Shown here: positions 8,545 to 32,800 of the stretch, one piece after another
Layout of the letters: the number at the start of each line of letters is the position of its first letter
How positions within the stretch are numbered: position 1 is the stretch's first letter
Assembly (NCBI GenBank): GCA_030704615.1
Contig: CM060731.1
Coordinates: 76,756,001 to 76,820,000, forward strand
Reading direction: 5' to 3'
Source of the DNA: Takakia lepidozioides
Taxonomy: Eukaryota > Plantae > Bryophyta
Length of the DNA stretch: 64,000 bases
Notes under the pieces: generated by a model
Seen by the model: the letters and a program-made list of their open reading frames with translations, nothing else
The model's database searches: none
Told to the model about the DNA's origin: nothing
Program-made: the position numbers and the translations under genes

Positions 8545-9230
8545 TCATGGGACAATGATTGGAGCCTCGACATCAAGGGAAAGGTCTCCGGTCCAAATCT
8601 GGTTGTAGGCTTTGTAGAAAAGAAATGCATTTGGACTTAGATGACAATGATTGGAGCCTCGAGGGGACTAGATATATCAATAATAAATTGGGCCTTGACA
8701 TTGGAGACGTACTGGGATACATAGGAAATTGCATTCGGGCTTAGATGACACTAGACACTTGGGCCTCTACATGGGAGATGCACTTGGATACATGAATAGA
8801 AGATTGCACTTGGGCTTAGATAGGCCTCGACAGAGGAGACACAGTTGGATACATAGGAAATTGCATTCAGTCTCGGATTTCAGTTCTTCACACATGGCCA
8901 ACGGCACAAGCTACACTAAAGGTCGCACTTGGGCCTCGACATAGGAGACGTACTAGGATACATAGGAAATTGCACTCGATTTTGCGTTTCAATTCTTCAG
9001 ACATGGGCCGATGGCACAGGCTACCCTAGAGGTCGCACTTGGGCCTCGACATAGGAAACGCACTACATATGAGATCTTGCACTTGGGCTTAGATGACACA
9101 AGACACTTGGGCCAACAGCACAAGCTATCCCAAAGGTCGCATCCGGGGTTGGACATAGGAGACGCATTTGGATACATAAGGGACTTAGATGACACTGGAC
9201 ACTTGGGCCAACGGCACAGGCTGTCCTAGT
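8545..9230. repeat. Degenerate mosaic subterminal repeats of the Sola-like element
   Basis: Recurrent blocks cacttgggcctcgacataggagacg, ggatacataggaaattgca and gggcttagatgacac. Confidence 0.75.
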
Positions 9231-9399
9231 CCTTCTTGAATATGACATTTTGTTGATCCAAAGTGCCAGATAGAAAAAATATATCCATGTATTACCAAAA
9301 ATATATTATTCAAAAAAATGAATCCATGTTTGATACTGACACATTGTGTTTTGTACCATGTAATGATATGTACGTATGAACATCATACTACAAGACCTT

Positions 9400-12300
9400 T
9401 TAGCGTTGAGACGAATATCCAAAAGAAGCTGAAGATGAACCTCCTTGCAATGATGATTCGTTTGCAAAATGACTACCTTGCAAGAGAGGCATAACTCTAC
9501 GTCGTCGTTTACTTATACCATGTTTCATTGTCTTGCTAATGTGCAGACGGTTCAAAATAATCTGGACATGACTCTCAACACCAGTGGACATGGTTCTATT
9601 CTCGCTGTGGTTGAACATATCATCGGAATTCACGCTCGCAACCACACTGCGTGACGTTGAAGATCCAGATTTGCGGGACTCTAATTCCAATAGTCGAGTT
9701 GAGGCCTTCTCCCGTCGAATTATATTTTGCAACTCCTCCTCATGATTCACTGAACAAAAAGTACACAATGAGACACTTCGAAATCCATGCCGAAGTACCA
9801 TGGAGCCACAGATGAACAACAATTTAGTAAATTAAAATAATTAATTTTTTTTTGTCATAATCACCGAAATTTTTTTGGCGTACCAAGATAATCAGGTTGA
9901 AGAAGGCGAGGGTGACGAATAGATGGATCAACATATCTCCCGAACCAAGACCAATGCCATCCGTCACATCTGATGGAAGGTCGTGTTCTCTTTACACAGT
10001 TTTCACTGACATAGTCCACCACACTAGAGGCTCCAATCATCTTGTGCATGAACGGCCAAACCGTCATCACCATATCACTCACGTTTTGGTCCATAGAGAC
10101 ATTTTTTCTTGAAGATAAAACATTGAAAGGAAGAGGGAAAAACCTTGTATTCTCTGGGTTCCTTAGTGCTTTGGAAGGCTCATCATCAACTAAGAGAATC
10201 TGACCTTGTTTTGCAAATGGCTTGTCTGCAAACTTTATTAAAACTTTGTCAATATCTTTGACCACGTACTTCATTTCATACTTGATATAGCCAGACGCAA
10301 TTGTACAGTGCTCAGCCGACCAAATGAAACAAAATTGTTTCATGATCTCCGGTGGAACAAAAGCTCACACCTGGACGAGGAATTACAAATGGTGTCTTTG
10401 GCACTTGAAGTTTTATGCGTCGTCCGGGATATTTAGCTCTCAACAACTCCAACCCACTTGGAGGGGGTCTGAAGCACAAAAGACCGTTGACGCTTAATAT
10501 GACAAGCATTCGTTTTTTCTGACCCGAGATGATTTGGGTGTTTACGCTCTTAGAGGCGGTCACCTAGAAATAAAAATGAAATATCATTAGTACTGCCAAA
10601 GAACAGAACATAAAATAAAAAATCACTAAAGAAAGATCACTTCGGACCATATGTCGAAGTGCATTGGGTATCTTTAAGAAAGAGACCCCATTGGCTAATA
10701 ACATAGTTCATCTTCTGGCAACAACATCAAAGGACATAACCAGAGTAACGCCTAAAAGAAAATAACTCATATTCTTCAACAAAACATATAAAGATAACAA
10801 GAAATGAGAATAATGCGAAAATATTTGAAACCATTTTAGGCAAATCGCTTAAAGACTTCTTTTTTAGGCTTTGTGAGTCTTTTTGAGTCTTTTTGGATAT
10901 TGGGAGCTGCAATGAGGACGACAAATCAGCTTCTCGACCTCCATCAGCGGTCGAACACTTCAACTTTGATCTTGGGGAAATATGCCATTTATCTTGAGAA
11001 ATATCCGTTTTCTCACTTGCATTCAATGACTCGGATCCTGTCGATCTACGAACCGAATTGGAGAATCTTTGAATGGAGATTCCACCAGTATTTTTTGTTG
11101 CGGACCTCACTTTGCATGGTATTTTCTCAGATTAAGAGGATGTTGTAACAAAAGAGCTTTCCTTATGTAGATCTGAAGTTATCCCTCTTGAGACCACGAA
11201 ACAATCAGACAATGCTTGGACATGCTCGGCTCAACTGAAACATATATAAGGTCTTGCTCGCAAAATGAAGTTTTAGTACATTTCTCGGTTCTGAGAGATC
11301 CATAAACTTCCCTTGCCTCGCCAAGAAATGTGGATTTATCCATTCTAAAATACTACATTTTGGACTTGCAGCAATTGGTTCCGAAAGATCCGTGAGTTGT
11401 CCCTGCCTTGCCAAGAAGTGTGGATTGATCCACTCCAAAATACTACGTTTTGGACTCGCAACTATCGGTAATTCAGATGATGCATCTCCACAGGGCAATT
11501 CAGACTGGGGTGGAATACTCTCCATTATAAGTCGTCTTCGTGCACATGGATTCATTCTTGTATGTCCCGATATCTGAAAGAACAAAAATAAAGATACATT
11601 CTTAAGCATGACATCCAACCAATTCATATGAATGGGGATCATAGATAAAACAAAATTCCAAATATACCTCTCTCTCCGAGATCCATGGTTGATTGTAAAA
11701 AGCAGATATACCATCGTTATCTTGAATTGAGCCAATCATTGACAATTGCGGAAGACCGGTGCTACAGTTCAGGTCCATCTGTATAGCTTCCAAATTAGCT
11801 TATTCCAGTAGCGGAGCAATCTGTGAAAATGCATGAACACTTAATGTCAAAGAAAAAAAAACACAAACATATATGGGATACTTTGCACCTCATGCCAAAG
11901 TGAAATGAAGTGAAGTGAAGATAATGATCGAGGACCAATTCTAAAGATGTGGCAATCCATCATTACGAGAGCTCTTCACATCCATATGGATAATATAATC
12001 ACAAGTCTTACTCTCCGTGAAGCATGGTCAAGACAAGTCTTCCAAATCCTTCATGACCAAGTTCCAACATGCAATGAGGCATGCATACAAATCATTGAAT
12101 CACATTCGTAATTTTGATAGGTTGATTGCAAAAAAATGGGAATAAATATCAGGAACAAACTTACAATATCAAAAACTTGGTGTAACTGACTAGATGAAAT
12201 ATGAGGACGGCGGTCAAAATGCTTGTAGAAGCCAACGACCATCAAATCTTCTCAAAGAGAAGAACCGTGACTATTTCAAGTGAAAGATATCTAAGTTCAC

Positions 12301-13100
12301 TTCAAATATAATACCTTACTATCCAATGGAAGCTTTAAGTGAACTTAGGTATCCTCTACATTTACAAGTCAACTGGTTCTTTTCTTAGAGAAGATAATAT
12401 GGTCATTGCTATATGTACTTAAGGTCTTGCCATGCTTTGTGGAACAAGTCCCTACTAATGGTACATTGATTGAGAAGTAAGGACTTCGAAACAGAGGCCG
12501 AAGCGACCTCAAGTATAATAAAAAGAGAAATGTTTGGAGAGTGGTTGGGCTTAATACCTCCAAGCCCACTACAATAGCCATTTCATGCGGAAGTATATGA
12601 GCGTGAAAGCTTTGGTTGTCCATATCTGTAATATGATAACAGTTGTCTTGTTTGATAGTTGGGACCGAATTATCCTTCAACTCCTCGATGGCCTGCATAC
12701 AGTCAAGGATACACACCTAAAACTAACACCATAAAACCTAAAAGATATGTCAAAGATTATGAAGAGACATGGAATGTTTAAATCTTTAAATGAATGTGAA
12801 ATGCAAGACATGGATGATGGTACCAGTGTATTGTCGATGTGGACATGAGTTTGTGGTGACACATTTGACGAACCCATTCTCCCGATATCATATAATTTTT
12901 CATCTCCAATTGATGGATAAGAAAATTGAGCCAATGTTTTCTCCATAAGCACATTGGAGTTCCTTGAATGCAGTAAGCATCCTCAATGGTGCAACAAAGA
13001 GAGACAGTGTCTAGCTGAAGACTAATATTTGAAGGAGTCGGAATCCGTTCGGCGATGTTGCGTTGTGCGACGAAATGCTCCGGAGATTGAATGAATGTTG
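9400..13100 (-). pseudogene. Multi-exon cargo gene ending in an FCP1/NIF-like HAD-phosphatase domain (domain ~9861-10563); N-terminal part unassigned
   Basis: KRMLVILSVNGLLC...RPGV...FIWS...ILLVDDEPSKALRNP motifs, with a frameshift near 10340. Splice-like boundaries and a 30-aa tandem repeat upstream. Gene limits approximate. Confidence 0.55.
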
Positions 13101-13445
13101 ATTTGATTGCAGTTGGAGTGCTATCAATTACAGGCTGACAAGATCCAATGGAAAGAAACGAGGGACCAAATCAATAGCAATTGTGAAATATGATGTCAAA
13201 AATATCCATCAAGTGATTAATGCCACACACAAGTAAGGGAACCCTATTACTTCGGAGATGAGACATTTCAATGGAGTAAATTATAAGAATCTTTGTAATC
13301 TATATATGCATCAATAGTTTGGTGTTCGATATTCAATATTTTAACATCATTAGTATCCAAAGAATCAAAGATAAAAAAATAAAAAAAATGTACACAATAG
13401 AGAAGAACAAAGATGAAATTTATTCGATATTCATAAATACTATCA

Positions 13446-14180
13446 TCAGTGACTTTTCTTGTACGCATTCTTATCAAGATAGTTCATCAGTTTTCAAAAC
13501 TTTGGATCCTCCATATTCTCTGGTGGAGCCCCAAATCTCTCCGAACGAACATATGTGGCCACGGACGTTGCTCGCGACAATCCGAGGAGATATTTCTCAA
13601 GCTTCTTCAATAAGCATTTGTCCTTTGCAATTGTTTCAAAGGTCAAAGGTTAAATGCATGACCACGTAGGATTGACAACACACTTTGTTGGACTATCATC
13701 AACAAGGAGAGTATTGACCTCATCATATCGACCTGGGTACTTCTCCCACACTTTCCTAAGAGGCTTAAAGAAACATAGATGGATGATCTGTTTGATTTTG
13801 TCTTGCCTTGTAGTGAGGATCAGTATTTGGGGGGCAGACTATGCAGTCGTTTTGAGTCATAACAAAAACAGGTTGTGACAGACCTTCAAAAAGTCTCTTA
13901 ACAATAGGCATGAGGTTTCGGAGCATCATACAACTCCAGATAGCTAGATCAAATGAAACACTTCATGAACGCCAGACTTGATCATAACGTTCACGTCGGT
14001 AGATCAATTTCTTGCCAATAACTAAGGGTTGTTTGAAATGTTTGCTTGCACTGGAATGTTCCTTCACAACAATACCCTCCTCAATTCTCTCTGTGCGGCA
14101 AAGCACACCGTTCAGGTCAAATATAATTAGCATTTATTTTTGGACACTCTGTATCTCGCCAAGAGGTCGTTGAGGCTCAT
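13446..14180 (-). pseudogene. FCP1/NIF-like HAD-superfamily phosphatase (cargo), with frameshifts and stops
   Basis: Manual minus-strand translation: MLIIFDLNGVLC...FDLAIWSC...VFVMTQNDC...FFKPLRKVWEKYPGRYDEVNTLLVDDSPTKCVVNP...YLLGLSRATSVATYVRSERFG. Not captured by the ORF track. Confidence 0.75.
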
Positions 14181-14625
14181 TCTGGTGAAATCAGAGAGTT
14201 GCAACCCTGAAACAAACGAGTTAGCAAGAAGATACACAATTATTGTAATAACCATTCAATAATACGAAGGCAACTAATATACCATACATATACACACATG
14301 GTTCTGGCTCCGAAATCAAAGAACCACAACATAGTATAATGTTCTTGACTCATTGGGGTCAATGGACAAATGGGTTATAGTTTTGGGTCTCACTGCTATA
14401 TCAAGAGTGGATAAAAGATGACACTAAAGAGTTATTCATAAGTGTACGTATTACATTGGGTCATAAGATGTAATTAGTTTTGTTATGTGTTTGAAAATTC
14501 AATACTTCGGAACATGTTTTGAAGTCCACACATCTAGAAAAATTGTAGAGTGAAGTTCATATAGTGTAGTAACACTTTACCAGATTTGGAGATGTTTCAC
14601 CTTGCTCATTGTTCGTCTCCTTGAT

Positions 14626-17600
14626 CTACAGCTGTTGAGGTTGATTTGGAATGACTGGGGGAATCCCCTGCTCCTGGAGCCTCTTTCGTGTTATCTCTTG
14701 GATCTGTGATAACATCTGTAGTGCATGTGTTGCTCCAGTGCTGTGTGTCTGTAGTGACAGCGGGCTAAGGACTGCGTCGAAGCTTGATTGGCTAACGTTG
14801 GTAATCACAGCATGACTTGTCACTTCCACTTGGGTCTGAGTTGTCCAATGTAACTCTGAGGGTGATTGCGACATAATGATCTCCCTCGTTTCTGAGAGTT
14901 GAACCTAGAACACACAATTATATTCATTAAGATTAATAGTTATAAAAGATGGATATCAAACATATAATCAAATATTAGTTTACCAAGGAATGTACTACTC
15001 AAATTTATTGCAAACATTCATATCAACGGTTTTCAACAATGTCTCATCATCTACCCAATCATAGTGTTTCCTGATCATAGATGTTATGTACTTCATTCAC
15101 TTTCCCAGTAGACGATCCTTCTCTACGCCTCTTCGTGGGGATGGGAGATTGAAAATCCAGAGGCCTATCACCAGCTGCAGGAACAAAACCCCTATCATCT
15201 TGCTCAGCCTCTACATCATCCAAGGCATTTGTTTCCTCTGGACGTGGGGATATTAGACCCCTCCCAAGTACCGCACCCATTATTGACTAGACACGATAAG
15301 TCGGAATGGCATGTGGGATAGGCTCAAGAAACTGCATTGTTGGTGGGCGATCACCATCATCATTGTGACGAGCCACATCCAAGATGTCAACAAACTCTGT
15401 CATGGTATTTTCCGGGACCTGCACATCAGACGCAATTGGATCTACCAGATTCACCAGATTGGCCTGATGACCCGTGGCATCGTAATCCAGCATCAGATTC
15501 ATAGACCCAAGTTTCAAATTCCTCTCAAACGACGATAATTTCTCGTTATTTTCCTCGTTATGAGGACTACTAGTACCATCACCAATACCACCAGTACTTG
15601 GACCTTGGGTGGCACTGCCTTCTGTGATCTGAGGTGAAACTCTTTTGACCACATCGTCTTGTGGTTCCTTACTTTTAGTCCCATGTTGATTGTCTTCGTC
15701 TGAAACATCCACTATGGGATTGATTGTGCTAGGGATAATAGGGTTTAGTGGTGGATCACGCCCTCCATGTTGACTCCTAGCGGTGCTCTGTTGGCCTTCG
15801 GTTGGACCTTTCCCTTTCTCTTGAAGCATTAAGTGACGAAACTATGCCTCTACCTTCTGTTTGCATACCACCTTTTGGTCGTGGGAGTTGAAGTCAAGAA
15901 CGCGTACTTGAAGAGCCTGGTGACATGATGATTAACTGTATCAGAGAAAAGATACAAGTTAGAGACAGTGGAAAAATATTAAATATCCTACGCAGGAATT
16001 ATAAAATGACTTCGGACCTTGTTTCAAAGCAACTAACAAAAAATGAGATAAGTGAAGATATAAAAATAAAGTGAAGAGATATAAAAAACTGTAACTCAGA
16101 ATATATTTATAATGATACTAGCACTTACATGGAGATGACAAGAAAGTGCAGGTCCTCCAAAAATATTGACCGCCGCCATTCCTGCCGTGCAAAACGAAGA
16201 GGCGATGTACGCATAGGCAGAGCTGCGAAGCTCATGAGTGTAGGACTTCAAATTCAGCTCGCGGTCTGTAAATTCGTCATTTGTACCCCTCAAGACAGTT
16301 TGAATTGGTTTGACTCTCAGACATCTGTCAATGTGCTCCTCTGGATGCACAAACTCTGCAGATGAGACCGGAAACACATAGTCCAGACAAAGATATGGTT
16401 CCGTCAATCCAAACTTACAGAACTTGTATTCAGTCTCCATCGCCCCAGGAAAATAGAGACCTTGAACACAAATAAATCTTTTGGCACCCTCTCCAGTTCG
16501 AATGTAGTAATTAAGATGAGCTGAAGATGTAGGACTAGTGCAATATTGAAACTTCATGAATCGGAATGCGTTGAGGATTGTTGAGTAATCCGAGGGGGAC
16601 CAAATTATCGAATCATCTTCTGGGAGAGTATTCACGAACACAAGACTGATGTTTGCAAACTCGTCCTTCGGGATATAGGCAAGTTTCGACTTGATATCAT
16701 CTACTTTTGCTCCAATGCCAACATGCCTATAGTCCTTTTTAAACCTCCTTTTATTCATGTGCTCAATATAATTCATCGTGCTCTGATTAGACTTGTCTTG
16801 GCCCTTATATGGGTGGCGAACAGTCAGCTTGCAACTGAGAAGCTTTTCCGCGATTTTTCCCAGCTTCCGCCCAGATAGCCCCTAAATAGTCCTTAGCTGA
16901 GACCTAGTCATTGGAACCTGTACACCTTTGCAAGGCTTCCCAATGTTATCGATAAGGCGTCCATCCTCCCATTTTTGGAATACCATTTTCCACTTCTCCC
17001 ACACTTCTTCCTCTAATAAAATGAGGACCATGGCCTCTTTCACAGAAATCTACTCCATGATAACATGGACAACTTGCATAAAATCCTGCGAGATGAACCA
17101 TATTGTAAGGACTCATCTCTACCATGTTCGATGAGCATTTGAAGCAATTATTGAAGCATTTGAAAAAACATAAGGTCAGTGTTTTACTTCTTACCACCCA
17201 TTGAGCGCTTTCCGAGTGGCAGTGGGAATCGTTATATTTTTTGGGTTTGTTTTGTAGCTCGTAAAATAATCTGCAATGTGCCACCTTCTCTGGAAATGTG
17301 ATATCAAATTTTTGTGCCTTGTTCGGATTGTTTAGGAGTTTTGATATCTTCACTAGCCTCAAGACGTCATTTGACCAAATGATCTTGGCCAGCCAAGTGC
17401 TGTAGTATGTCTTCAACTCATCATTGTCAACCTCATGAATAAGCTCCTGTAACCAACTCTATAATGTTAGATCATGGACTTCGAAACAAAGGCCGAAGTG
17501 GGTGACTCAAAGACTTTGGAGGGGGAGGGTAACCGTACCTTGGCAGCAATTATGGTGTGTTGCCCACCAATCACAAAGAATTTTGCATTCTTCACCTCGT

Positions 17601-18433
17601 CCCAAGACTGAGGTTTGTTGGCCCAAACTTGACTGTCATTAGTGGCATGTATTGGGGTAATGTAGACGGGATGCTTGGAATCGAGGACTCGGAGCTGGAA
17701 CAATCTAGCCTTTACTTCATCCTTGTGCTTAATATTTAGTGGCCGATAAACCATTTGCCTCGGTGCTTGCTCCATGCTCAATATGGGAATATCATGGATT
17801 TTGTCAGACCCCAAATGGAAACAAATCCCCGTAAAATTTGTTGAGCTCTTTTTCCATTTTCTCACATTTGTTTTTGTTGAAAATTTCACCAGGTTTTGGC
17901 TTCTTGTCGGTTTCAAATTCAGGGTCAAGTGGGGCTTTGGACTTCCTCTTTGACTTTGATGGTGTTTTTTCATCATCATCGTCTTCAATGGATGCTTCAG
18001 TGGTCGACTTTCTTTTTCGAGTGGCTTTTTTTTTCTTTTCAGTTGGTTCGGGCTCTTGCTCATCTCTTTTCTTCTCATTCTCTTTTCCTAGAATAAAGAG
18101 GCGTCCCTGAAATCTGGACCACTCCAAAGTGAAAGTAGACTCACTCGGAACTGTTCCATTGCGTGGGAACTTAAACCCAGATTCCAACAACCCAGCCATG
18201 AGGCTTTTGTCCACATTTGTCGTCTTTGACGCATACCCAATGGTCCGTCCTTTCTGGTCCTCCTCTTGAAGAAATACGACCACATACGGATTATCGACAT
18301 CAGGCTGGATCTCCACACCCAAAACATGTGCGCATTCCATCTCCAAAGCCCCAGGCTCATCTTGTTCCGTATACATGAATCGAAAAACATGGGCCGGAGG
18401 ATTTCCTCGCATGTTAATTCCCCAAGAGGACAC
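14626..18433 (-). pseudogene. Large multi-exon cargo gene: basic/acidic region, ParB/Srx-like domain, degenerate DNA-methyltransferase-like fold, disordered tail
   Basis: ORFs 17804-18433, 17467-18078, 16946-17416, 16096-16776, 15287-15829 and 14626-14874 join via frameshifts and introns (donors near 17538 and 16127). Motifs FFVIGGQHTIIAAK and ELRSSAYAYIASSFCTAGMAAVNIFGG. Confidence 0.5.
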
Positions 18434-19605
18434 TCTCTCTGATAGATAGAATATTGAGTTATGCTCGGTTTGATGTTCTGGAGACTGTTCATAAAATCCC
18501 CAGCGATGTCATAAGTCATGATGGGTTTGCTTGCATATGGACATTTTTTCTTGCAACATATCAAATAATTCTTTAAGCCACCAAGATTGAACTGAAGGAC
18601 TTCAAAACAAGGTCCGAAGTTGTTTCCATGTAATACAAATGGTGTGTATGAAAGTCCAACTAATGAAAGAAGAATGAAACACCGTAATAGACACAGGAGT
18701 TAGGGGAGATCAAATGAGTAAACCATCTGCAAATGTGAAATGGTCTTTATCACTAATGATGTACTGGATGATGGCAACATGGGTGGTGGCTATGAGTATG
18801 GACTTTGTAACAGGGTCCGAAGTCCACCTCGTCAGAGATCTAACAGTAAAAATGTTATGTTTAAAGTTATTGCGGATATATATGGATGATCTCCAAGTCC
18901 ATGTAAATATAAAAAATACAAATACTTAACATGAATAAGAACGAGGATTTATTAGATGTATCATCTGGTGGGGACTTCGTAACAGGGTCCGAAGTCCAGA
19001 CAACTCAATTAACGATTGCAGGACCACTACATTTAAATATACAAGAACATTTGAATGCAATCTCTATAATATCTATATATAGACTGATATAGGGTTTGAG
19101 GTCCATCACAAAAGAGAGACATGTAAACATAGGATCTCAGGACCTCTATAAATAAATAAATATAAATATTTAGTCTGACCAAATTGCACCAACTTATATA
19201 TGAGTTTGCATTATGACATGGCAACTATTAATGATGGCAAGGTGGTGGTTCTGGTTCTCAGAATGGACTTCGTGACAGGGTCCGAAGTCCACCGAGTCAG
19301 AGACCTGACTTGAAAATTTACTTCATTCCCATATATATATATATATATATATATATCACATTTTTTAAATAGAATAGAATTTTTTATGAATTTAATATGA
19401 ATAATTATATATTATATATTATATATACACATAAACAATATATAATGCATATATAATATATAATCTACATTATACATAACAGATAAAAATATAAAAATAT
19501 GTATATATATATTTGATATTGATGTACATGATATAAGTATATATTGATATATATATATATATAATGTTTTTAATACATTTATAAATATATAATTAACATT
19601 CTATT

Positions 19606-19991
19606 TAGAACTAATATGTGAGATCCCAATCCGAATGTTGAATGCCAATACCGATTTGATATCTATATTTGAATCTAAATTCGATATCTAGATTTGTTCA
19701 TGAATTCAGGGTTTCACGGTTTCAGACCAAATTCATGCCACATGTACTGAAACACTGATCGTGTGCTAAATGCCACACCATTTCAGACCGTGTTAAGAAC
19801 TAGTATGTGAGATCTCAATCCGAATGTTGAATGTGCTCCAAAAGCCACTGATATCTATGTTTCAATTTAAATTCGATATGTAGATTTGTTCATGAATTCA
19901 GGGTTTCAAGGTTTCAGACCAAATTCATGCCACAACATGTATATGAAACAGTGATCGTGTGCTAAATGCCACACCGTTTCAGACCGTGTTA
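19606..19991. repeat. ~190-bp tandem duplication, preceded by (TA)n/AT-rich tract (19331-19600)
   Basis: agaacta(a/g)tatgtgagatc...ttcagaccgtgtta occurs twice. Confidence 0.85.
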
Positions 19992-20537
19992 TGATACATA
20001 AAGAATTAACAAACATGAATCATGTATTTGTTCTGCAAGAGATGTTGTATTTGCTTAGACCATCCGCACGGTGTTCACAAACGTAGATATCTGTGAATAT
20101 TATTTGTATATGACATCACCAATGTTGGTGTTCAATGATGGAGAAAGAGCCCCAGGGTATTTGACAAAGAAAAAGAGATTCTGAAGAGAAAGAGGATTGA
20201 GAGAGGGAGAGAGAGAGATAGCACGAACCTAAGCTGAAAATCGTTAAAAAAAATTATAAACAAAGAATTTCTCACCTACTGGAGCTACTGGAGCCCGTCA
20301 TGCTTGCGGGCTGGTCCCCGCTCCTCCCTACTCGCAGCTACGTCTGCTGGGGTTCCTAAAACCAAACTTACCCTCCCAAGTACGTTGTAAACACCTAGTC
20401 CAAGAAATACCAAATCGTTATAGCCAAATCGTGACATTTACAGGAAGAGTCATAGCCCGCAGTTGCTTTGAGGTTGATGGCTATGGTTGTTGGCCATGGG
20501 CTGCTGCTCTTCTAAGACCAAGGTGAACCTCTCAATA

Positions 20538-23500
20538 TGTCGCGCACCTCACTTCGATAAGCTCCCCTTCAAGTCATAGTTACTCGCTTTGATGCGCGCG
20601 CCTAACTCCCAACCTGGCTGCCGGGCCAACTTGGAGCTTCGGTTGCTCACCGAGGCATAACGGTCCCCCTTTGATCTCTCAAAGAATCCTCCACCGATTT
20701 GGGCCCAGCGGGAATTCCCTTTGGTAGTTGGCAGTCCGGAACAGCTCCCCACTTTTTGGTCGCTTTCCGGTTCGCTCGCTTACTCACTAGTTTTTGGTCA
20801 CCAATGGGTTGCACCGTTCTCGGGGTTACTACTCCCTATATATACTTCTGTAGCTGTCCGCGGGGGTTTCACAACCAGCCATGCCATTTTATGGCGAACC
20901 ACCACGAAAACCCTCGACTCCCGGTGATGAGTCGCGGTGAGTCTTGGCCCACTCACCACGGCCCCTATGGACCGTGATGAGTCCCAAGACTCCCCACTAC
21001 TCCCACCACGAGGTCTCCGCCCCCATGGTGAGTCCTATGCCACCCCCATTAAGTCCCGCTAAGCTACCACCACCCCTTTGTGAAGCCACCCCCACCGCAT
21101 CCCCCTAGTGAGCACCTCCGCCTCCTTGAGTGCTTTGGGTACTCAAGGGTGCTTCAGCCCCCCGTACCTATCGCTGCCACTACCCCCACCACAGGGGCAG
21201 CCCCTCATGTGTCCTGACCCCCCTGCCCTCAAGGCAAAGGGCCGCGACACACACCCCTACCAACAGGGAGTCGATGTCCTCATCGACTTGTCCATTTTGT
21301 AGAAACGAACATCCAAGTTGTGGCGTCCCACATCAAGGAGTTTGTTTCCGTACCATGGCGTCCCATGGCAAAGAACCAAAACCCACACTTGACTCTACTC
21401 TCCACTAGCTAGTTCGGCCGACTTCCTCCAAGTCTCGGCCAGGGGTGGAGCCTCTCAAGCTCCTCCCAGTGCACTCTTCTTGGCCTACTTCAAGGCCAAG
21501 GAACGATCCTCCTCGAGGATCGAATCGCCTTACTGCATAACATTGCTTGCGATCGCTCATGATGCCGCCTTTGGCATCACCTTGCGCAAGGGTTCACCTC
21601 GAACCCCCTTTGACTAGGAAGATAACCTTGAACCAACCGTGCGCCCCAATCACTACAATTGGGTCCGTCTTGGAATGCTGGCCTAAGGTACGGGAACACG
21701 TCGAAGCCGCACTACGACTTCGTCCCGAGGCTACACGATTATAGTACGTGAACGGAAGTACGTAGTTTCCGCGTTAGCCCGCACTACAAGGCAACCACCT
21801 CGGTAGCGCAGTTATAGTACGCGCACGCGCCAGGTGCGCACTAGCACGTGAACTCCCAAAGAAGGCGCATGTTTCCTTGCCCCTTGGATGGGAGTCACCC
21901 GATTTCGGCACTGCGTAAACACACGATTAACCCAATTTACCTCTCCCACTTTTGTAAGCTAGCATGCATTCTACACACTAGCCAACCACACCATGCATCA
22001 CCATTCCAAACAAAATAGGACGCACAACATTTGGAACCCATTTCCGTTATAACAAATTTTTGTACAATACAAGTTTTTGCAATCGGATTCCTGAGCTAGC
22101 TAAGCCGGGCTAAGCATGCATTTCCTCCCCCACGCTCCAAGGTTGATGTCCCCATCAATGCTTCTTCCGCTTTTGAGGTCGCCCTTCGAAAACTGCAACC
22201 GCCTCGGATGCGTTTCCCATTTCTGAGGCACGCACCCAAGATGCCTCCACATAATGATAGCCCTTCCATTTGACGAGATACTCCGTTTCTCAGTTCTTGA
22301 ACCTCCTCGACTTAAGTACTGCCTCCACCTCGTACTCAGGTTCATTTTCATGATCCAACAGCACAGGTGGCGGACGCAACACTTGATGCCGATTCGGACG
22401 CGCTTCATCTTTGAAGTAAGGCTTCAAAAGGGAGACGTGGAATACTGGATGCACCTTGCTGTTTACCGGCAGCTCCAATTCATACACATCCTCATTCATA
22501 ACCTTCCGGATGCGAAAGGGTCCCGCATACGGAGATACGAACTTTGGACTCACTTCCGGAGGTAATCGGAAATTCTTGATGTTCAACCAGACCTCCGTGC
22601 CTGCCTCAAACTTCACTTCCCTCCGCTTCCGATTCGCCTGCCTTTCATACCATTTCCTAGCTTCGACAATGTTGTACTTTGCGAGCTTCAACAAACGCTC
22701 GCATTCTTCCAGTACCGCCGCTACTACCGGTTCCTCAACGTCCTGGGTGGCCCAACTTGTCGGCACCAGAGGTGCTTTTCCATAGACCAATACGAAAGGG
22801 GAAACTCCCGTTGCGGAGTGTTCTGTGTTATTATAACATAACTCTGTTGCGTCTAAGTGTTCCACCCAGTCTGTTTGGTCTGCCGACACGTAATTCCGCA
22901 AGATCTGCTTCACTACAGAATTCACTCTTTCTGTTTGGCCGTCGGTCGTAGGTCGGAAGGCGGTGCTCATCTTCAGCCTCGTCCCCATCTTCTTCCAAAG
23001 TGCCCTCCAAAATTTACTCGTAAACTTTGGATCGCGGTCCGAGACAATATCCTTCGGGACTCCATGATGCTTTAAGACGTGGGCGAAGTAAAGTCGCCCT
23101 GTTTCCTGCGCCGTTGCCGTCTCCTTGGTGGGGATGAAATGACCCATTTTACTGAACCTATCCACCACCACCATGATTGCATTGAATCCTTTTGACAGCG
23201 GCATAGCAATCATGAAATCCATCGAGACGCTTTCCTAAGTCCCCTCTGGAATCGGCAAGGGTTGTAACAGCCCCGCTTGCTTTTTGTATTCGCTCCGGTT
23301 TTGTTGGCATGTGGTGCATGTCTTGACATACTCCTCTGCCTCCTCCCTCAGTTTGGGCCAGAAATACTCTTTCTTCAAGAGTGCCGCAGTGCGCTTGGCT
23401 CCGCCGTGGCCCGCAAGCGGGCTATCATGGCATTATTTCAAGAGGCTATCTCTGATCCCTCCCTTCGGCACGTAGAGACGCTTTTGCTTATACCAGAGCA

Positions 23501-26500
23501 GTCCATTTTGCAAGTGGAACTGCGATTTAACCCCCATCCTCAAGTCCTGCATCACGGACTTCGCCAGCTCATCCTTCCGGCAAGCCTTCTGGATCTTCCT
23601 TTGGAGCGCCGTCTCGCCCTTGTACACCAACAAGAGCTGCTGCTTTCTACTTAAAGCATCGGCCACCACGTTGTCTCGTCCCGGTTTGTACTGGATATCC
23701 ACGTCGAACACCGCCAAAGTATCTTGCCACCTAAGTTGTTTTGGGGACAACTTGGGCTGCGTGGCAAAATACTTCACCGTGACATTGTCCGTGAACACCT
23801 TCACTGGGTTGGAACCAACATAGTGGCGCCAAAGCTCAAGACAGTGCACCACCGCCTTCATCTCTTTCTCGTGCGTCGGCCACCGTCGCTCCACTTCATT
23901 CAGTTTCTTACTTTCGTAAGCCACTGGACGTCCATCTTGCATCAGTACACCCCCAATCGCGAAGTCCGACGCATCTGTATGTATCTCGAACGGACGATCC
24001 AACTCCGGGATTTTCAAGACTGGAGCTTCCGCCATCCGCTGCTTCAATTCAGCAAAAGCTTGGCCACAAAAGGTGTTCCATGCCCAGACTTTGGATTTAT
24101 ACAGAAGGTCTGACAGCGGCCCCGCGATCTTGGCAAAAAATTTCACATACTTCCGGTAATAGGAGGCGAGTCCTAGGAAGGATCGCACTCCCGGGACCGA
24201 AGTCGGAGGCTCCCAGTCCAAGATTGCCCTCACCTTCCTGTCATCCATTCTAATCCTATCCTGTGTAATCACATGCCCCAGGAACTCCACTTTTGTGACC
24301 CCGAATTCGCACTTTGAAGCTTTGGCATACAACTTCCCTTCTCGCAATTTTTGGAACACCCTTTTCAGGTGTTCCAGGTGCTCCTCCTTTGTTTTCAAGT
24401 ACACCAAGATGTCGTCGATGTACACGATCACAAAGTCATCCAACCACTCCTGAAAAAGGTTGTTCATCAGCGTGCTAAATGTCGCTGGTGCATTGGTGAG
24501 CCCAAAAGGCATATTCAAGAACTCATATGAACCATACCTTGTCCTGCACGCGGTCTTCTCCTCATCTCCTTCCGCCACCCGAATTTGATGATAGCCGGAG
24601 CGCAAGTCGATCCGGCTGAAATACTTCGCTCTTGCCAACCGATCGAAGAGGTCGTCGATCCTTGGCAAAGGGTACCGGTTTTTGATAGTCACCTTATTCA
24701 GAGCCCTGTAATCGACACACATCCGCAGCGTCCCATCCTTTTTATCTGCAAATAGTACCGGGGCTCCGTAAGGTGACTTACTCGGCCGGACGTACCCCTT
24801 TGACATTAGATCTTTGAGCTGAGTCTTCAGCTCGACAACTCTCTGTGGCTCAACCGGTAGGGCGCCTTGGCAGGCGGTTCCGATCCCGGTATCACCTCAA
24901 TCTTGTGGTCAACTCCTCTTCGCGGTGGCAAACCGCTCGGTAAATCCTCCGGCATCACATCCTGGTATTTCTCCAAAATCCCCTTGATCCAATCTGGGCT
25001 CGGCTCCCCATTGCCTTCTCCCTTCACTTCTCTAATGTAGAGCAAAAACTGGGGCTCGTGTGCCTCCTCCATGGCCCACTCCCTTGCTGACAGAAGGTTT
25101 ATTCGCCCTCCCACGGGTTTGGGCATTTCCGACACTCGTAAGACCTCGCCACCATTCCCACATGGCAGCGTGACTACTCTCTTGCGTCTATGACCGCTCC
25201 GGATTTGCTCAAAAAGGTCATCCCCAAAATGAGATCCACTCCATCGATCTCGCAGATGGTGAAGTTCTCACGTCCCTCCCAACTCCCCAGTTGAAGAGGA
25301 ACATCAAACGCCAACCTTGTCGCCAATTGCGGTTCTCCTTTGGCAGAACGCACCTCAATAGAGGCCCCCATGTCACTTGTCGGGAGTCCTAGCTTTTGTG
25401 CCATTGCCGGTGTCATGAAGGAGTGCGACGCTCCTGTGTCCACCAACAACGACACGTTAGTTCCGGATATTATCCCATCCACGAACAATAACTGACTCCC
25501 TTTACGTAAGGCGCCAGTTTCCTGATACAACTCACAAGAAAATTTGCCTACCTTGCAAGTCCTGGCGACCACCGCTTCCACCAAGCGACTGATGGTATCT
25601 TCCGACAGCTCTGTGGTCGCCCGAGTCATGTTCAATTGTCGGGGCTTCGTGCACTTCTTGGCCATGTGCCCGGGCTCCCCGCAATTGAAACACACTCCAT
25701 CAAAGGTTGCCTTCTGTCCGCCATAGGCCGCTCCACCCGCTTTTCCTTTCGAAGCACCGGGTGCCGCCTTGACTTGTGATGGCCCTCCCTTCGATTTCCA
25801 CGTGCCATTGTCGCCGCGTGGCCTATCCCACTTCTTTTCCGGTCGGAAGGAGTCACCTTCCCGCCGGGTCTTCTTGTGGTTCAGCTCCGTACGGCCTTGT
25901 CTTTCACCCCTAGAGACATCCGAGAAACATTCAGCCCTCTCAATTGCCTCGTTCAAAGTCTTAGGTGGCTTCTCCTCCAACTTCCGCCTGGCCCATGGGG
26001 CCAGTCCCGCCACAAAGTTGAAGACCATTGCCGGTTCTGTCATGTCCGCGACTTCGAGCAAAAGCACATTGAAAGCCTGGATATATCCCCGAATGTCATC
26101 TGTTTGCTTCAAATTCCTCATCCTTTCCCGGGCAAGCCAGAACGCGTTGAGGGGCACAAACTGTCTCTTCATCAATTCCTTGAACCCACTCCAGTTCAAG
26201 GTTTCCGGGCTTGGACCTCGGTCGTGAAGGCGTTTCTGCCACCATTGTTGAGCATAGCCCCTCAAATAGGTGGGAACCACTTCCACCCGATCCTCGTCAC
26301 TCAACTTGGCCGCCCGGAAGTACTGCTCTAGCTCCAGGAGCCAGGTGTTGAGTGCCTTCCGATTTCGGACGCCCTCGAAGGTGCCGGGTTCCTTAGGCTT
26401 CACCTTAAGCTTTGCCTTAGTGGAAGTGGCATTAGCCGCCTTCAACACGTCTTTCAGCGTCCCGCCAAACTGCGCCAACAACCCTTCCCAAAAGGCTGCC

Positions 26501-27325
26501 GGCATGGGAGGCATCTGTTGGTCGGTTGGAGCTCTCAGGGATTCCTCAGGCTCCGACTCCTCCCGCTCTTGAGCGGCCTCGTTTTCGGAAACATGCATCG
26601 CTTCCTCAAACGGCCGCCTGGGTGACACGTCGCCCCCATCGGGCTCACCAGGATCATCATCTTTTGGGCCGTTCCGCTTTCGCTTTGGCTTGCCCGACCC
26701 CATGATGAGGCCAATCCCAAGGACGATCACGTACTGAACTCTAAGCTCTGATACCAAGTGTCGCGCACCTCACTTTGGTAAGCTCCCCTTCAAGTCATAG
26801 TTACTTGCTTTGATGCGCGCGCCTAACTCCCAACCTGGCCGCCGGGCCAACTTGGAGCTTCGGCTGCTCACCGGGGCATAACGGTCCCCCTTTGATCTCT
26901 CAAAGAACCCTCCACCAATTTGGGCCCAGCGGGAATTCCCTTTGGTAGTTGGCAGTCCGGAACAGCTCCCCACTCTTTGGTCGCTTTCCGGCTCGCTCGC
27001 TTACTCACTAGTTTTTGGTCACCAACGGGCTTGCACCGTTCTCGGGGTTACTACTCCCTATATATACTTCTGTAGCTGTCCGCGTGGGTTTCACAACCAG
27101 CCATGCCATTTTATGGCGAACCACCACGAAAACCCTCGACTCTCGGTGATGAGTCGCGGTGAGTCTTGGCCCACTCACCACGGCCCCTATGGACCGTGAT
27201 GAGTCCCAAGACTCCCCATGACTCCCACCACGAGGTCTCCGCCCCCATGGTGAGTCCTATGCCACCCCCACTAAGTCCCGCTAAGCTACCACCACCCCTT
27301 TGTGAAGCCACCCCCACCGCATCCC
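20538..27325 (-). mobile_element. Nested Ty3/Gypsy chromovirus, tRNA-Met primed, 5' LTR truncated
   Basis: 3' LTR 20538-22120; PPT (reverse complement tttcctccccca) 22121-22132; PBS TGGTATCAGAGC at 26745-26756; partial 5' LTR 26759-27325, roughly 97% identical by eye. Confidence 0.92.
22155..26703 (-). pseudogene. gag-pol of nested Gypsy (gag, CCHC, PR, RT, RNase H, INT, chromodomain) with about four lesions
   Basis: [39 protein letters not shown], integrase core, EYEVEAVL...YLVKWKGY. Breaks near 25174, 24836, 23433 and 23236, plus a stop in the chromodomain at 22290. Confidence 0.9.
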
Positions 27326-27528
27326 TGGATCATGACCTGAAACAAAATTTCTCTCTAACGCTAATCCTCCACCCTATAAATCTCTCTAACACTAATACTC
27401 CAGACTTGCCTTGCAAATCTAAGGTACTATCCTTGCTCACAAAGATTCTACGCTCACATTTCGCTCGCTCCACGCTCTCACTGTCTCCCTCACACACCCC
27501 GATCGAGCAGCCTGGCTGAAAACAAAAA

Positions 27529-27587
<59 letters not shown>

Positions 27588-28242
27588 CTCTCTTTCACGA
27601 TATAGACTTGGCAAATCGCTCCTCTTCCTCACCGTCGGATCTGAGTCAGATCCGACAGTTGTGGCGTTTTTCCTTGGATGGAAAGAATGGATGTAGGGTG
27701 GATAGTCCATCCATCCAAATCCATAACTAGCTACTTTGGGGGCCTTGCAAAATCCATTATGGCGGGTAAGCGGCGCCTCCAAAAACACATTATGGGTCCA
27801 TTAATGTGAGAATAAAGTGCAGATCTTGTCCCCCCCCCGTGGTTTGGGGCTCAATTCCTCTTGGCATGCACTCAATGGATATTCAACGATCGGGATCGTG
27901 CAGATTAAGAGGATAAAAAATGGACCTCCACACATCCGCGGATTTTGATTGGGCCGTCATCTATACATGGCAGAATTCATCCATCATGACCAGTATTTCA
28001 TCCAGGTTATGGTGAAGTAATCACCATTTTGACCTTGATTAGTTGGATTAGTTCGATAAATTCGATCCCCATTAGGCTAGATAAATTTGATTAAATGTGG
28101 TATATGCATAAAGATCATATTCTCAAATTCATTTTATTTTCTTCTTTGAAAACAAAAAGACGGAGTGGCAGCTCAAAATTGAGACTATTTACAAGGGGCG
28201 GGGGAAGAATGGGAGGGGATAAAATTGACCCTTAGTGACCGA

Positions 28243-28886
28243 TCAGGATTTGAGCCTCATACCATTGGCGTGATGTGCACCATATATTGAATTGTGTCAC
28301 TTACCATTATGGTGGGCCCCCACGAGTAGTTATGGTGGACAAGGGGGTGATTGCGTGGCGAGTTGAAGGGCATGTGGGGTCTTTTTAAATGACTGCGCAC
28401 ACGTGGTTGCCTCATAATGGGATTCATATCTACTTTGCATGTGTAGGCCACATGGACACCTCAGGATTTGAGCCTCAGACCAGTGGCCTGATGTGCACAA
28501 TATATTGAATTGTGTCACTTACCATTATGGCGGGCCCCCACAAGTAGTTATGGCGGACAAGGGGGTGGCTGCGTGGTGAGCTAAAGGGCATGTGGGGTCT
28601 TTCTAAATGACTGCGCATACGTGATAGCCTCATAATGGCCCAAATATGGATTCATATCTACTTTGCATGTGTAGGCCACATCGACACTTCAGGATTTGAG
28701 CCTCAGACCAGTGGCCTGATGTGCATGATATATTGAGTCATTTACCATTATGGCAAGCCCCCAAGAGTAATTATGGTGGACAAGGGCATGACTCCGCACA
28801 CGTAGTAGCCTCATGTGGCCAAAATCCACATGCGCACATGTCGTAGCCTCATAATGCCAAAATCCACTTTGTTTTGCATATGTAGG
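28243..28886. repeat. Three ~220-bp tandem units upstream of the Sola-like transposase
   Basis: tcaggatttgagcctca(t/g)acca... at 28243, 28461 and 28689. Confidence 0.85.
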
Positions 28887-29424
28887 TTTTTTCATAATGT
28901 GCTCAAGATTGATCGAGCTAGAGGGGAGGTTGCAAACTCTCATATGCTTGCAACCGTGCGATCATGATTCTCCAACAATTGACGGCTAACATAGGTTGAT
29001 CCCCGTCATAGCGTCCCCACCTCTCTTGAAGGAACACGTTGTGACCTACACCAAACATCCCACATGTATAAATAAGAGGTCTCAGCTCATTTGCTTCCTT
29101 TCTTGCTCATCTTGTACCTCCATGATAATCCCGGAGCGCTCTCTCTTTCCCTCTTTCCACCCCACCCCTCTTCTCTTTGGTTCTCTTCAGTCTCACTCAC
29201 TACTAGTGAGTGCTCTTTCCACCCCACCCCTCTCTTCAGAATCGTCTCTCACTCCCCTCTCTTCAGACATCTCCTCACCCAATTACCCATTTTCAACTCT
29301 AGGAAGGTTCGTACCCCATGCCGAAGTATCGCAGTGAAGATTTAAATCTAGTATTCTTCATATAGTTTATTATATTTCATCCATACTTATTATATCATCC
29401 ATATTATTCCATCCATCCATTTAT

Positions 29425-29650
29425 CATCCATCTGGTAGCATTTCGTAATATGTTTCGAAGTTTAGTTTGAATAAAGTTGTTAATCGATCTATCCGGAGGT
29501 ACTTCGTAACATGTTTCGAAGTTTGATATGAATACATTTGTTAGACGATCCATCCAATGGTACTTCGTAACATGTTTCGAAGTTCAGTGTGAAAGACCTT
29601 GTTAGTTGACGATCCATTCGATGGTACTTTGTAACGTGTTTCGAAATACA
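29425..29650. repeat. Four ~62-bp tandem units, each carrying the 22-bp palindrome
   Basis: ggtacttcgtaacatgtttcgaagt-like cores at 29440, 29501, 29562 and 29626. Confidence 0.85.
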
Positions 29651-29885
29651 GTATGAATGGATTTGTTGGTCATTGGTCATTAGTTGTACTGAAGCTGTCA
29701 CTGTTTGTGATCATTGGTTGTCTAGACGAATCTCGAGGTAGGGCATTTGGGATTCCAATATTCACATTAACGTGTCCAAATATACCGTCAAATAAAAATA
29801 TCTAGTTCGGGAAGTTTACAAGGTGGAAGTTCGGACTGTGTTTCAAAGTCATTGTCGTCCGTGAGAAGATTTTGGTTCAGTCGAC

Positions 29886-32800
29886 ATGTCTCTATTTAAA
29901 AGCGGAGATAGGGTGTCTCTATATTTTCGAGGAGGTGGTCAAGTTGTCGCTCTCGGTGATTGTTTAAATGTGTCTGGTAGTGGATCATGCCATGGCCTCC
30001 AGCTTACTTCATCGACAATTAGTGTCATTATTGTCAGCTGCTCAAACACAAATGATAGGACAAATCTCCCATATCCTCATATGGGAGCAGATACGATTGA
30101 GGAGGCAATTGGAACGCCGGTTTGTTGGGATGTCCGAGATGTTAAGCTAGCCCAAGTCGACATTCAAATTGAATCTGAGTCTGGTGATGAAGTTCCTTGG
30201 AGACCTTAGACGGATAAGACAGACATGGAGAAGCTTGAAGAGACCATGGGTCATCATGAGAAACAAGATAGTTCTACTCATGATTCATTTCCAAAGGATC
30301 ATATTTTGGGAAGAGACAAGTGGAGGAATATGATGTGTTGTCTTTTGGATAGAGAATCTGATCATCTCTATAAAGGGAGAATTCAAGTGTATTTTCCTGA
30401 CGAAGTCATTCTCTGTGACAAATTGGGAGAGGACCATGTTGGTGTTATCATCACACGAGTTATAGGAGGGGATTCCGGAATGCTCATGTCACTTGTAAAG
30501 TGGCCTCTGAATCGGACAAAGTTGGTAGAGACAAGGATTATGCTTTCTGAGGCTCTTGAGCACTTTTATAACTCCAACATTGATTCTGCAAATGATGATG
30601 ACTCTGCTCCAGGAATCCAAAAAGATCCATATCGACTCTTCACCATAATTGCCAGAGACCCGGGTTTACAGAATTCGAGGAAGTCCAAACGACTGTTGTC
30701 CCTTGAATCTGTTCGGCAAGTGAGTAGTAAGCCATGTTGTAAGCTAAAGTGTTGCTAACATTTTGATTGGCAAAGAACTCTTGCAATAAGGACAACTTTC
30801 TGGGCGTCAACGTTTGATTCTAGGAGAGAACTTGGATTTGATATTCCCAGGCGTCTTCACATTGTTCAGGGTTGCAAACGGAGGAACTACATAACAATCG
30901 AAGGTGTCGATATTTGCGAAAAAGCATGGTGGACGATTTTTGGGGTTGGCCGTTCAACATACATGGAGTACAAGAAGCTGAGCAAAGAGGGTGTTATTAC
31001 ATCATTTCATGGGAACTCGGGGATGAAAAAACCACGATCAAATACCCTCTAGGCTGAGGGAAACATTCTTTCAATCGTTAATGGGAATAATGACTGCATG
31101 CCCCATAAATTGAGGAGCATTGGCAATGGGAAACGAGACACTTTGAGGCTGCTTCCAGCTGATTTGAATTGGAGGAAAGTTCGTGTTCAGTCCAATGAGG
31201 TAAGTTAATTGAGCTCTCATTTGCTATCATTGACATTATATATATACTAGCACTTCGAACCTCGTTTCGATGTGACTGTCTTTCTCGAATTTCTTTCCCA
31301 CACTACATTATGTTTCGGGATAATACTTAGAAGCATACCTGCTCTATGTGAGTCCACGAGACGTAGGCGCCGGAACTTTTGTTTACTTTCTACCCGTTGG
31401 AGTCCCTTGACTCTTCTCATTCTGTTGTGCACTATTTCGGTACTGGATTGGGTGTTTTATCTCGTGGACTTAAAGTCATTAATCATATTTTATGTATTGA
31501 TTCATCACCATTTTGGATGCAGGTCAATGGTATCCTTGGTCTTGCACCTGTTTCTAGTTCGACCATAAGTCGGATTCGAAAATGAGTTTTTTCAAATGTT
31601 GAACTACGTAAGTGTGGGAGTACTTTTGCAAAATGCACAGAGTGTGAGATGTTGAAGGATCTTATCAAAAAGTCTGTGAAGCGAAGTGATGATCAACTCA
31701 GCCATAAAAAATTTTTAGACAAACATTTGAAGCATCAAGAGTCTTGTCGGAGGCTTTATCACAGCTGGAGAAATGAATCCGCTATGATGGGAAATGAATT
31801 TCTTTGCATCATCCATGATAAAATGGATCACCAAAAGACGGCTCTTCCACGTCTACAAACCACAAACAAGATGATATCAGGATTGGGTCAGCTTCCAATT
31901 TCCTTGACTGGGATGATAACTCATGGATACGGAGATGGAGCATATGCCTAGTACTCGGTCGATTTGTGGCCTGGAGATCCGAATTTCACTATTGGTTTTG
32001 TTGCAAGATGCCTCCGCCAACTTGAGAAACCTACTTGCAAAGAATCAAAGAATATTTTTGACCATCCATTCCAAAATGATTTTTTTGAGCAATTAATGTG
32101 GGGAAAGTCCAGATGGGTAGATGTGTTGAAGCCATTACATCCAGAAGCCCAAAAGGGACCGCGGCCATTGCCTCAGAGATTATATTTGTAGATGGATAAT
32201 TGTGTGAAGGACAACAAGAATAGGTGGATGTTGGTATTTCTTTCTTTGCTCACAGCAAGGGGTGTATTCAAAGAAGTTCAATTGGGATTTCTGATGGTTG
32301 GTCAAACGCACGAAGATATAGATGGATTTTTCAGCTATCTCTCAAAAAAATTGAAAGAGAACAACACTTATGTCTTCTCAGATTTAATGAGACATTTCAT
32401 GGGTTCTCAGGAGTTGCAGTTTATTCTACAAATCATTCAAGAAGTTCCTGACTTCAAGGAGTTTGTACATGGTCATATTATTGATGGAAAAGAGGCTCTT
32501 GTTGGAGCTATTGATATGCATGTTTTTCGGTTTTACATGGATTCAGAAAATTGGCCTGTCATGCAATACAAGAAATCCGTGACTGATTCTGATTGGCTTC
32601 CAAAACAAGGTGCAGTTAAAATGTGGAAAACTCTTGACGATGGATCTCCTTCACTCCCCGTGGGTGAGCCTAAGTCAGTGCCCATGAGACCAATTTGGGA
32701 AGACAACGAGGATGCGGTACATAAGCAATCTATCATCAAATCCGGACTAAAAAAATATCTGGAGTTTTTGGAGAAAGGGAATGAATATTGTTGAGCACTA

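Follow-up and report, generated by a model that had tools for sequence, protein, structure and literature searches.

A family-specific palindrome array in a DUF7869 transposon of Takakia lepidozioides as a candidate self-recognition system

How a transposon family distinguishes its own copies from the rest of the genome has been worked out closely in only a handful of eukaryotic cases, VANDAL with VANC and Spm with TnpA. VANC21 binds a short motif, the 9-bp non-palindromic word YAGTATTAY, that has accumulated in the introns and in the intergenic and terminal non-coding DNA of VANDAL21 (PMC5735166); these motifs are often found in tandem repeats and change fast between related families, and VANC removes silencing (PMC5735166, Hosaka et al. 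2017). A preprint (10.64898/2026.08.24.746577) likewise reports transposases as sequence-specific activators of their own copies. Here we analyze a set of 22-bp palindromes, ACTTCG-N10-CGAAGT, in the non-coding DNA of a large DNA transposon from Takakia lepidozioides, which lies in a 64-kb stretch of contig CM060731.1 (positions 76,756,001 to 76,820,000), hereafter the window, from whose first letter all coordinates are counted. VANC/VANDAL21 appears to be the closest system in logic, the likeness being a family-specific motif in the element's non-coding DNA that is often tandem and differs between related families. In contrast to the 9-bp word, the motif here is a palindrome of 20–24 bp whose core spacing is fixed at 10 nt; VANDAL elements are Mutator-like, whereas the window element has a DUF7869 transposase and a 4-bp target-site duplication; and no VANC-like gene was recognized in the present system.

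In En/Spm (CACTA) elements, the 12-bp subterminal motifs of TnpA lie within a few hundred base pairs of each end, and a logic like that of VANC on VANDAL21 has also been proposed for TnpA and for Mutator transposases. The similarity would lie in repeated motifs over the promoter for an element-encoded regulator, which tie self-recognition to activation and transposition, and relatives of the window element have sites beside both ends; however, the window sites run through ~18 kb including introns (8325–31273) rather than being confined to the ends, and the end-proximal TCCGGA repeats of the window element differ from its internal motif. Compared with the subterminal repeats of Ac and En/Spm, the relatives have subterminal plus many internal sites. 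For phage Mu, Tn7 and Tn3, transposase-binding sites block insertion into the segment that carries them (immunity), and an internal enhancer of Mu helps to assemble the complex. Sites spread evenly over a large element, as in the window, would suit such an immunity or enhancer role, although those systems use end-binding sites or a single internal enhancer, and we know of no eukaryotic cut-and-paste element with ~15–20 internal sites. A literature search found no description of such palindromes in Sola-like or DUF7869 elements. What is new here is that related DUF7869 transposons share the design while carrying different palindromes of 18–24 bp.

Number, geometry and placement of the palindromes

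Measured against dinucleotide-preserving shuffles of the window, the palindrome array is far beyond chance: ACTTCG-N10-CGAAGT occurs in seven exact copies (shuffle mean 0.00) and in 19 copies with at most two mismatches, where 1.46 were expected and the shuffle maximum was 4. A sequence-only reading of the window had listed 18 positions, and all of them hold the motif, 7 exactly and 11 with one or two arm mismatches; a possible nineteenth, decayed site was added at 8325–8346, where both mismatches are CpG to CpA. When the same arms were searched at every spacer from 0 to 20 nt, allowing one mismatch, 13 matches were obtained at a spacer of 10 and 0–1 at each of the others, in agreement with the fixed spacer that had been claimed; the spacer sequence is semi-conserved. 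All 19 copies lie within the transposon (8010–34415). At up to two mismatches the motif is absent from the Ty3/Gypsy retrotransposon nested in the element and from the other 37 kb of the window, which bears out its proposed confinement to the element.

When the sites were split into halves, each read as far as the dyad, the consensus was (t)GG-ACTTCG-nAACA. An ideal site is thus a complete 22-bp palindrome, ACTTCGAAACA on one side of the dyad and TGTTTCGAAGT on the other, with ACTTCGGACC as a frequent variant half; the arms often extend to TGG...CCA, and the 10-nt spacer is itself palindromic. Asymmetric variants occur in mixed orientation within a single transcription unit, and the site at 16009 is indeed the reverse complement of that at 18599, the match holding across the whole spacer. 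Changes of CpG to TpG or CpA account for 10 of the 18 arm mismatches, as expected from the CpG decay suggested earlier. Approximately 13–14 sites can be counted as independent, given that four belong to tandem units of 61–64 bp and two to a 70-nt repeat. Solitary half-sites showed no enrichment in the element, the left end excepted.

Nine sites (8325–18620) are dispersed along the left arm with gaps of 0.6–2.0 kb (mean 1.28 kb, coefficient of variation 0.32), a placement more regular than random (P ~0.002–0.006). Following the decayed copy at 8325, these comprise exact palindromes at 9775–9796 and 10639–10660, a copy with two mismatches, TG and CA on opposite arms, at 11880–11901, copies with one mismatch at 12483–12504 and 14504–14525, a copy with two mismatches at 16009–16030, an exact copy at 17478–17499 and the copy at 18599. 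The even spacing could be due to either one site per intron or a requirement for regular coverage, and intron spacing may contribute to it. To the proposed placement of sites in introns, RNA lends support at one site only. Sequencing runs were compared with the window over positions 14400–19400 (5,001 letters), and a contig from run X6, which is taken as RNA by guess, is 95–99% like the window and omits exactly 17446–17537. This 92-nt segment is a GT-AG intron on the minus strand (GTACGG...CTAAC...ACAG), with CTAAC as branch site, in an accessory gene with a ParB-like exon, and the palindrome at 17478 lies at its middle. In DNA runs of the same organism the transposon family is multi-copy.

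The remaining sites cluster mainly upstream of two divergent genes, as the sequence-only reading had stated for both 5' regions. A four-site array (18599–19288) is located 35–720 bp upstream of the minus-strand ParB-like gene and consists of palindromes at 18599–18620 (the first of the array, one mismatch), 18802–18823 (one mismatch), 18974–18995 (exact, with arms extended to GGACTTCG/CGAAGTCC) and 19267–19288 (exact), of which the second and the fourth lie in the 70-nt repeat common to both. A six-site array (29306–29849) is located 37–580 bp upstream of the first open reading frame (ORF) of the plus-strand transposase gene; it begins with a palindrome with two mismatches at 29306–29327, continues with four tandem units of 61–64 bp on the plus strand (29426–29672, repeat family D6), each with one palindrome (29440, 29501, 29562 and 29626), and ends with a palindrome with two mismatches at 29828–29849, 37 bp upstream of that ORF. 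Before the insertion of the retrotransposon, both arrays were part of one divergent intergenic region. One further site, with one mismatch, lies at 31252–31273 between the N-terminal exons and the catalytic exon of the transposase.

Palindromes of related DUF7869 transposons

No protein in the collection searched is closely related to the catalytic exon, the best matches being 50–54% identical. Eleven loci around these best matches, taken from other assemblies and labeled L001 and so on, were scanned for repeated palindromes without a prior motif and then with the motifs found. In blastn comparisons with the window, the transposase core alone aligns (67–71%). Four loci of assembly ERZ25073694 carry the motif (GC)CATCGGGAGA with TCTCCCGATG(GC) across the dyad, that is, CATCG-N10-CGATG, with 16 sites in L002, 15 in L007, 16 in L008 and 9 in L129 at up to 5 mismatches of 20, where ~0.08 per locus are expected; a control scan with this motif gave no site in the window, L001, L003 or L004. 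L007 is bounded by 27-bp inverted ends (2150–12910) and L002 by ends of the same type (about 978–12525), and in both every site falls between the inverted ends, with none in ~19 kb of flanking DNA. The sites occur in arrays 5' of the transposase gene, between its exons and downstream of it. In L007 they adjoin both ends (2212 and 12805), the end-proximal sites of the relatives being 60–110 bp from the transposon ends and outside genes, and three of its sites are in 28-bp tandem units (9509, 9537 and 9565); the tandem units that carry palindromes in the relatives are 28–115 bp long. Just inside their ends, the ERZ25073694 elements have a different palindrome, TTTGGACT-N6-AGTCCAAA, in the same place as a subterminal palindrome of the window element (8029–8049).

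Other relatives carry other motifs. L003 has 12 sites of GGATGGGGAGC and GCTCCCCATCC, joined at the dyad, in two arrays. L004, L006 and L130 share (G)ATTTGGTGG with CCACCAAAT(C), with six sites in L130 and 23 in L004, where 14 of them form an array upstream of a ParB-like ORF; L130 and L131 both hold a transposase homologue. In L001, GCATTTT-N8-AAAATGC is repeated in 46-bp units upstream of the gene. In seven loci (L002, L007, L008, L129, L004, L006 and L130), the gap before the catalytic exon contains a palindrome of the type proper to that locus, and the window has its site at 31252 there. Aligned from the dyad, the half-sites read nACTTCGnAACa in the window, CCATCGGGAGA in the ERZ25073694 families, GATGGGGAGC in L003 and GCATTTTnTA in L001. 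They are in a common register, with CnTCG in both the window and ERZ25073694, and both of these motifs reduce to TCG-N10-CGA. Motif similarity tracks transposase similarity, L003 being closest to the ERZ25073694 group on either count; by transposase, L001 forms a pair with L004, and the likeness of their AT-rich arms was judged by eye only.

L002, L007 and L008 are distinct families, which align only in coding DNA (67–79% nucleotide identity), the one exception being a 170-bp stretch that L002 and L007 share at their right ends. Nevertheless, each retains 15–16 copies of the same 20–24-bp motif in non-coding DNA that does not align. Such retention of the motif while the non-coding DNA diverges points to function. 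A motif type that tracks the transposase is what co-evolution of the sites with a reader, the protein that would bind them, should produce.

Several details of these loci stand apart from the general pattern. In L002 (7827–7846) and L007 (8475–8494) a palindrome of the ERZ25073694 type lies at the same place inside the conserved transposase ORF, where it encodes ..KSSGD(P/V)P(M/L)D.., a linker modeled at lower confidence before the second of two predicted barrels; a palindrome inside coding DNA thus appears to be tolerated. L001 has two motif types in one element, as two cores of the L004 type (TGGTGGCCACCA; 6661–6678 and 7375–7392) flank its own GCATTTT..AAAATGC array. In L008, eight sites of the ERZ25073694 type (1561–2185) are found ~4 kb outside the presumed left end at 6010, which could mean either that the true end is further out or that a second element adjoins. 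AT-rich palindromes that had been picked first in L004, L007 and L008 were superseded by the stronger GC-containing motifs, and searching metagenome contigs with the motif as a pattern yielded 120 single, unrelated matches, mostly in GC-rich coding DNA and with no arrays, which we regard as noise.

The host transposon and its genes

The transposon measures 26,406 bp including the nested retrotransposon (8010–34415). Its 24-bp left terminal inverted repeat, AACTCAATTTTAACTAATTCCGGA (8010–8033, plus strand), matches the right one (34392–34415, minus strand) at 23 of 24 positions, the inverted ends reading AACTCAATTTTAACTMATTCCGGA, and the element is flanked by a 4-bp target-site duplication, ATTT on the left (8006–8009) and ACTT on the right (34416–34419), one transition apart. 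Removal of the element and one 4-bp copy rejoins the flanks as an uninterrupted Ty3/Gypsy protease frame, ..NHVIIG(F/L)PWFVLHNPDIDW, in which the protease is a Pfam match. The rejoined frame, the inverted ends and the duplication together set the bounds of the element, and the transposon is inserted in a Ty3/Gypsy protease gene. The Sola superfamily reportedly combines a 4-bp target-site duplication with terminal inverted repeats, and the sole grounds for the label 'Sola-like' here are this duplication and the inverted ends.

At the left end, TCCGGA repeats lie beside the subterminal palindrome CCGGACTT-TGAAG-AAGTCCGG (8029–8049), a single case 20 bp from the end. This palindrome and the extended arms of the internal sites both hold GGACTT/AAGTCC, which may hint at a common origin and proves nothing. 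At the right end, the arms of the internal sites recur once with a 4-nt spacer (ACTTCA-ATTT-CGAAGT, 34278–34293), 122 bp from the terminus. Short-spacer versions of the internal arms are therefore present in both subterminal regions, each as a single case.

The transposase gene (29886–33348, plus strand) has N-terminal exons followed by the catalytic exon, where DUF7869 (E 2e-31) is the sole Pfam family matched. The window copy is a pseudogene, with in-frame stops at 30756, 31050, 31949 and 32189, positions at which sense codons are present in relatives. On the minus strand are several accessory genes. One of them is the ParB-like gene (14626–18564), which has transcribed sister copies, has its ParB-like exon at 17539–17835 and is frame-shifted near 17804–17835. 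An accessory ORF at 9861–10343 (minus strand) has a sub-threshold match to the NIF/FCP1-like phosphatase family PF03031 (E 0.029, 14.5 bits against a cut-off of 21.8), and cargo resembling a C-terminal-domain (CTD) phosphatase might bear on transcription or silencing; apart from this match, Pfam searches of the accessory ORFs were negative. The intergenic region common to the divergent genes is split by the nested Ty3/Gypsy element (20538–27325, minus strand), a long terminal repeat (LTR) retrotransposon with LTRs at 20538–21103 and 26759–27325 and with gag, protease, reverse transcriptase, RNase H and integrase. Tandem repeats of 192 bp (19607–19991) and 218 bp (28243–28793), which contain no palindrome, flank it. 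Elsewhere in the window, at 56013–58640 (plus strand), there is an intact intron-less gene for a PPR-E-DYW editing factor of 875 amino acids, which marks the host as a land plant.

Candidate readers and competing explanations

The best-supported reading, to which we assign a probability of roughly one half, is that the palindromes would be self-recognition sites for an element-encoded dimeric protein. The 22-bp sites would be bound, as duplex DNA, by a two-fold symmetric, sequence-specific protein of the transposon family. Distributed over all types of non-coding DNA in the element, in arrays before both genes and at about one per intron every ~1.3 kb, and in relatives beside the ends too, they would together label the whole element as 'self'. 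Binding would most likely recruit the protein to its own promoters and to the body of the element, activating transcription or countering silencing; alternatively, the same binding might help to pair the ends or protect against self-insertion. A complete palindrome and mixed orientation are what one would expect of a symmetric reader of duplex DNA. The sequence-only reading had proposed operator sites for such a protein, and this remains the best explanation, strengthened by the design of the relatives and by the motif having been kept while its flanks diverged; the link it drew to ParB and parS has been weakened by L002 and L007.

These two relatives (10–11.5 kb) have the transposase as the sole recognizable gene between their mapped ends and carry a full set of 15–16 sites, and no ParB-like ORF was found between their inverted ends even at E up to 1. 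The design can therefore do without the ParB-like gene, the large size and the cargo, and since the transposase is the only recognizable protein common to all carriers, it is a likelier reader than the ParB-like protein. We consider the N-terminal, non-catalytic region of the transposase to be the most likely reader, its binding being predicted; in the window lineage the ParB-like accessory protein comes second, as an optional candidate, and another protein supplied in trans may also serve. For the N-terminal region (L007 8231–9211, homologous to window 29886–31205; 135 homologues), structure modeling (pLDDT 87) predicted a pair of small beta-barrels and, after them, a Cys-rich helical domain (CC..CC). 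Resemblance of the barrels to KOW, Tudor, Agenet, SH3-like and SAWADEE folds is weak (Z 5–6.7, Foldseek E ~0.01–0.1), and such matches are generic; a histone-mark reader within a transposase would be of interest if true. The helical domain modeled alone (pLDDT 84) gave nothing above noise (Z up to 4.1), and its matches to KorB, ParB and SorC-type helix-turn-helix proteins (Z 3.1–3.6) were not taken as evidence.

Several observations weigh against an element-encoded reader. No DNA-binding fold could be assigned to the element proteins from two AlphaFold models and three fold searches of the transposase N-terminal region. Next to the ends lie sequences (TCCGGA repeats; GGACT-N-AGTCC) unlike the internal palindrome, so a transposase reading both would need two specificities. 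The window copy is a decayed pseudogene and thus gives no sign of present activity. Finally, several families sharing one motif within one assembly would also be expected from a host factor.

This last point leads to the reading in which a host transcription factor or chromatin protein binds the sites, for expression or for escape from silencing. The arrays just upstream of both genes would fit it, as would three diverged families with one motif in one assembly, which a host-owned reader predicts. However, no site was found in the 37 kb of the window outside the element or in the flanks of L002 and L007, motif type follows transposase kinship, and use at promoters leaves the intron sites and the end-adjacent sites unexplained, so that we consider a host factor unlikely. 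Similarly unlikely, in our view, is a parS-like system, in which the ParB-like accessory protein would load at the palindromes and spread over or condense the element. Language-model features place the ParB-like exon near the DUF3723, DUF6551 and ParB_N clusters (score 0.92, 172 shared), the gene lies directly downstream of the four-site array, L004 and L005 carry a homologous ORF, which in L004 follows the 14-site array, and the ~1.3-kb spacing would suit a spreading protein. Conversely, with exons searched singly, the ParB-like exon gave no Pfam ParB match and no sequence homologue, it reads GGQH at the box where canonical ParB has the arginine-rich GERR, and no DNA-binding domain was identified in the protein. 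What recalls bacterial ParB–parS is a palindrome of comparable size, present in many copies, with a putative ParB-like N-terminal domain encoded beside an array, whereas the carrier is a eukaryotic transposon rather than a replicon, the ParB likeness is feature-based only, and the co-occurrence of sites and gene holds in L004 and the window but fails in L002 and L007. ParB–parS and immunity of the Mu/Tn7 type are thus best treated as functional analogies only. As a separate lead, DUF3723, the closest family to this exon by features, is listed in the literature among the conserved accessory genes of the fungal Starship giant transposons, a possible parallel between plant and fungal cargo transposons.

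An action at the RNA level, with stem-loops in introns and 5' leaders controlling splicing, RNA stability, export or small-RNA production, appears improbable. Every palindrome can fold in RNA from either transcribed strand, many sites are in introns, and the ERZ25073694 site folds strongly (−21 kcal/mol, z −3.2). However, only weak hairpins are predicted for the sites of the window (−5.4 to −12.6 kcal/mol, z +0.4 to −2.9), with none for the consensus of the tandem array, which argues against a purely structural role in RNA, and no Rfam family matches the palindromes. Furthermore, the arms are conserved in sequence beyond pairing, and the would-be loop is conserved and palindromic. Together with mixed orientation and with the end-adjacent sites of the relatives, which lie outside genes, these features favor a symmetric dimer that recognizes duplex DNA. 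Least probable of all, and in our estimate very improbable, is the absence of any function, the palindrome being a self-spreading micro-repeat accumulated by chance through tiny foldback or MITE-like (miniature inverted-repeat) insertion or through slippage of tandem units. Part of the copy number does come from tandem duplication, in 61-bp units here and 28–115-bp units in relatives, and palindromes are prone to slippage. Nevertheless, direct repeats flank the dispersed sites no more than chance would allow, and identity between the flanks is at the random level (mean 0.37), and these absent duplications and unrelated flanks rule out micro-MITE or foldback insertion. The motif is also strictly confined to elements, it persists in families whose non-coding regions have become unalignable, and the same intron is occupied across lineages bearing different motifs.

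If the palindromes are indeed self-recognition sites, the system would offer a second, independent and sharply defined case of family self-recognition, with a long palindrome, a fixed geometry, ~15–20 copies per element and family-specific versions. As the candidate readers are few, the specificity of the reader, the co-evolution of protein and sites and the effect of binding are directly testable, and the palindromes provide a practical annotation signature for delimiting poorly described elements. On a broader scale it is possible, if still rather speculative, that in plants and other eukaryotes the whole DUF7869 Sola-like clade labels itself with long palindromes that evolve fast, placed about once per kilobase of non-coding DNA and co-evolving with the transposase, whose two Tudor/Agenet-like barrels may sense chromatin. 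Each family would then activate, protect or shield only its own copies, a general principle of self-recognition in large cut-and-paste transposons that would have arisen independently of VANDAL and VANC.

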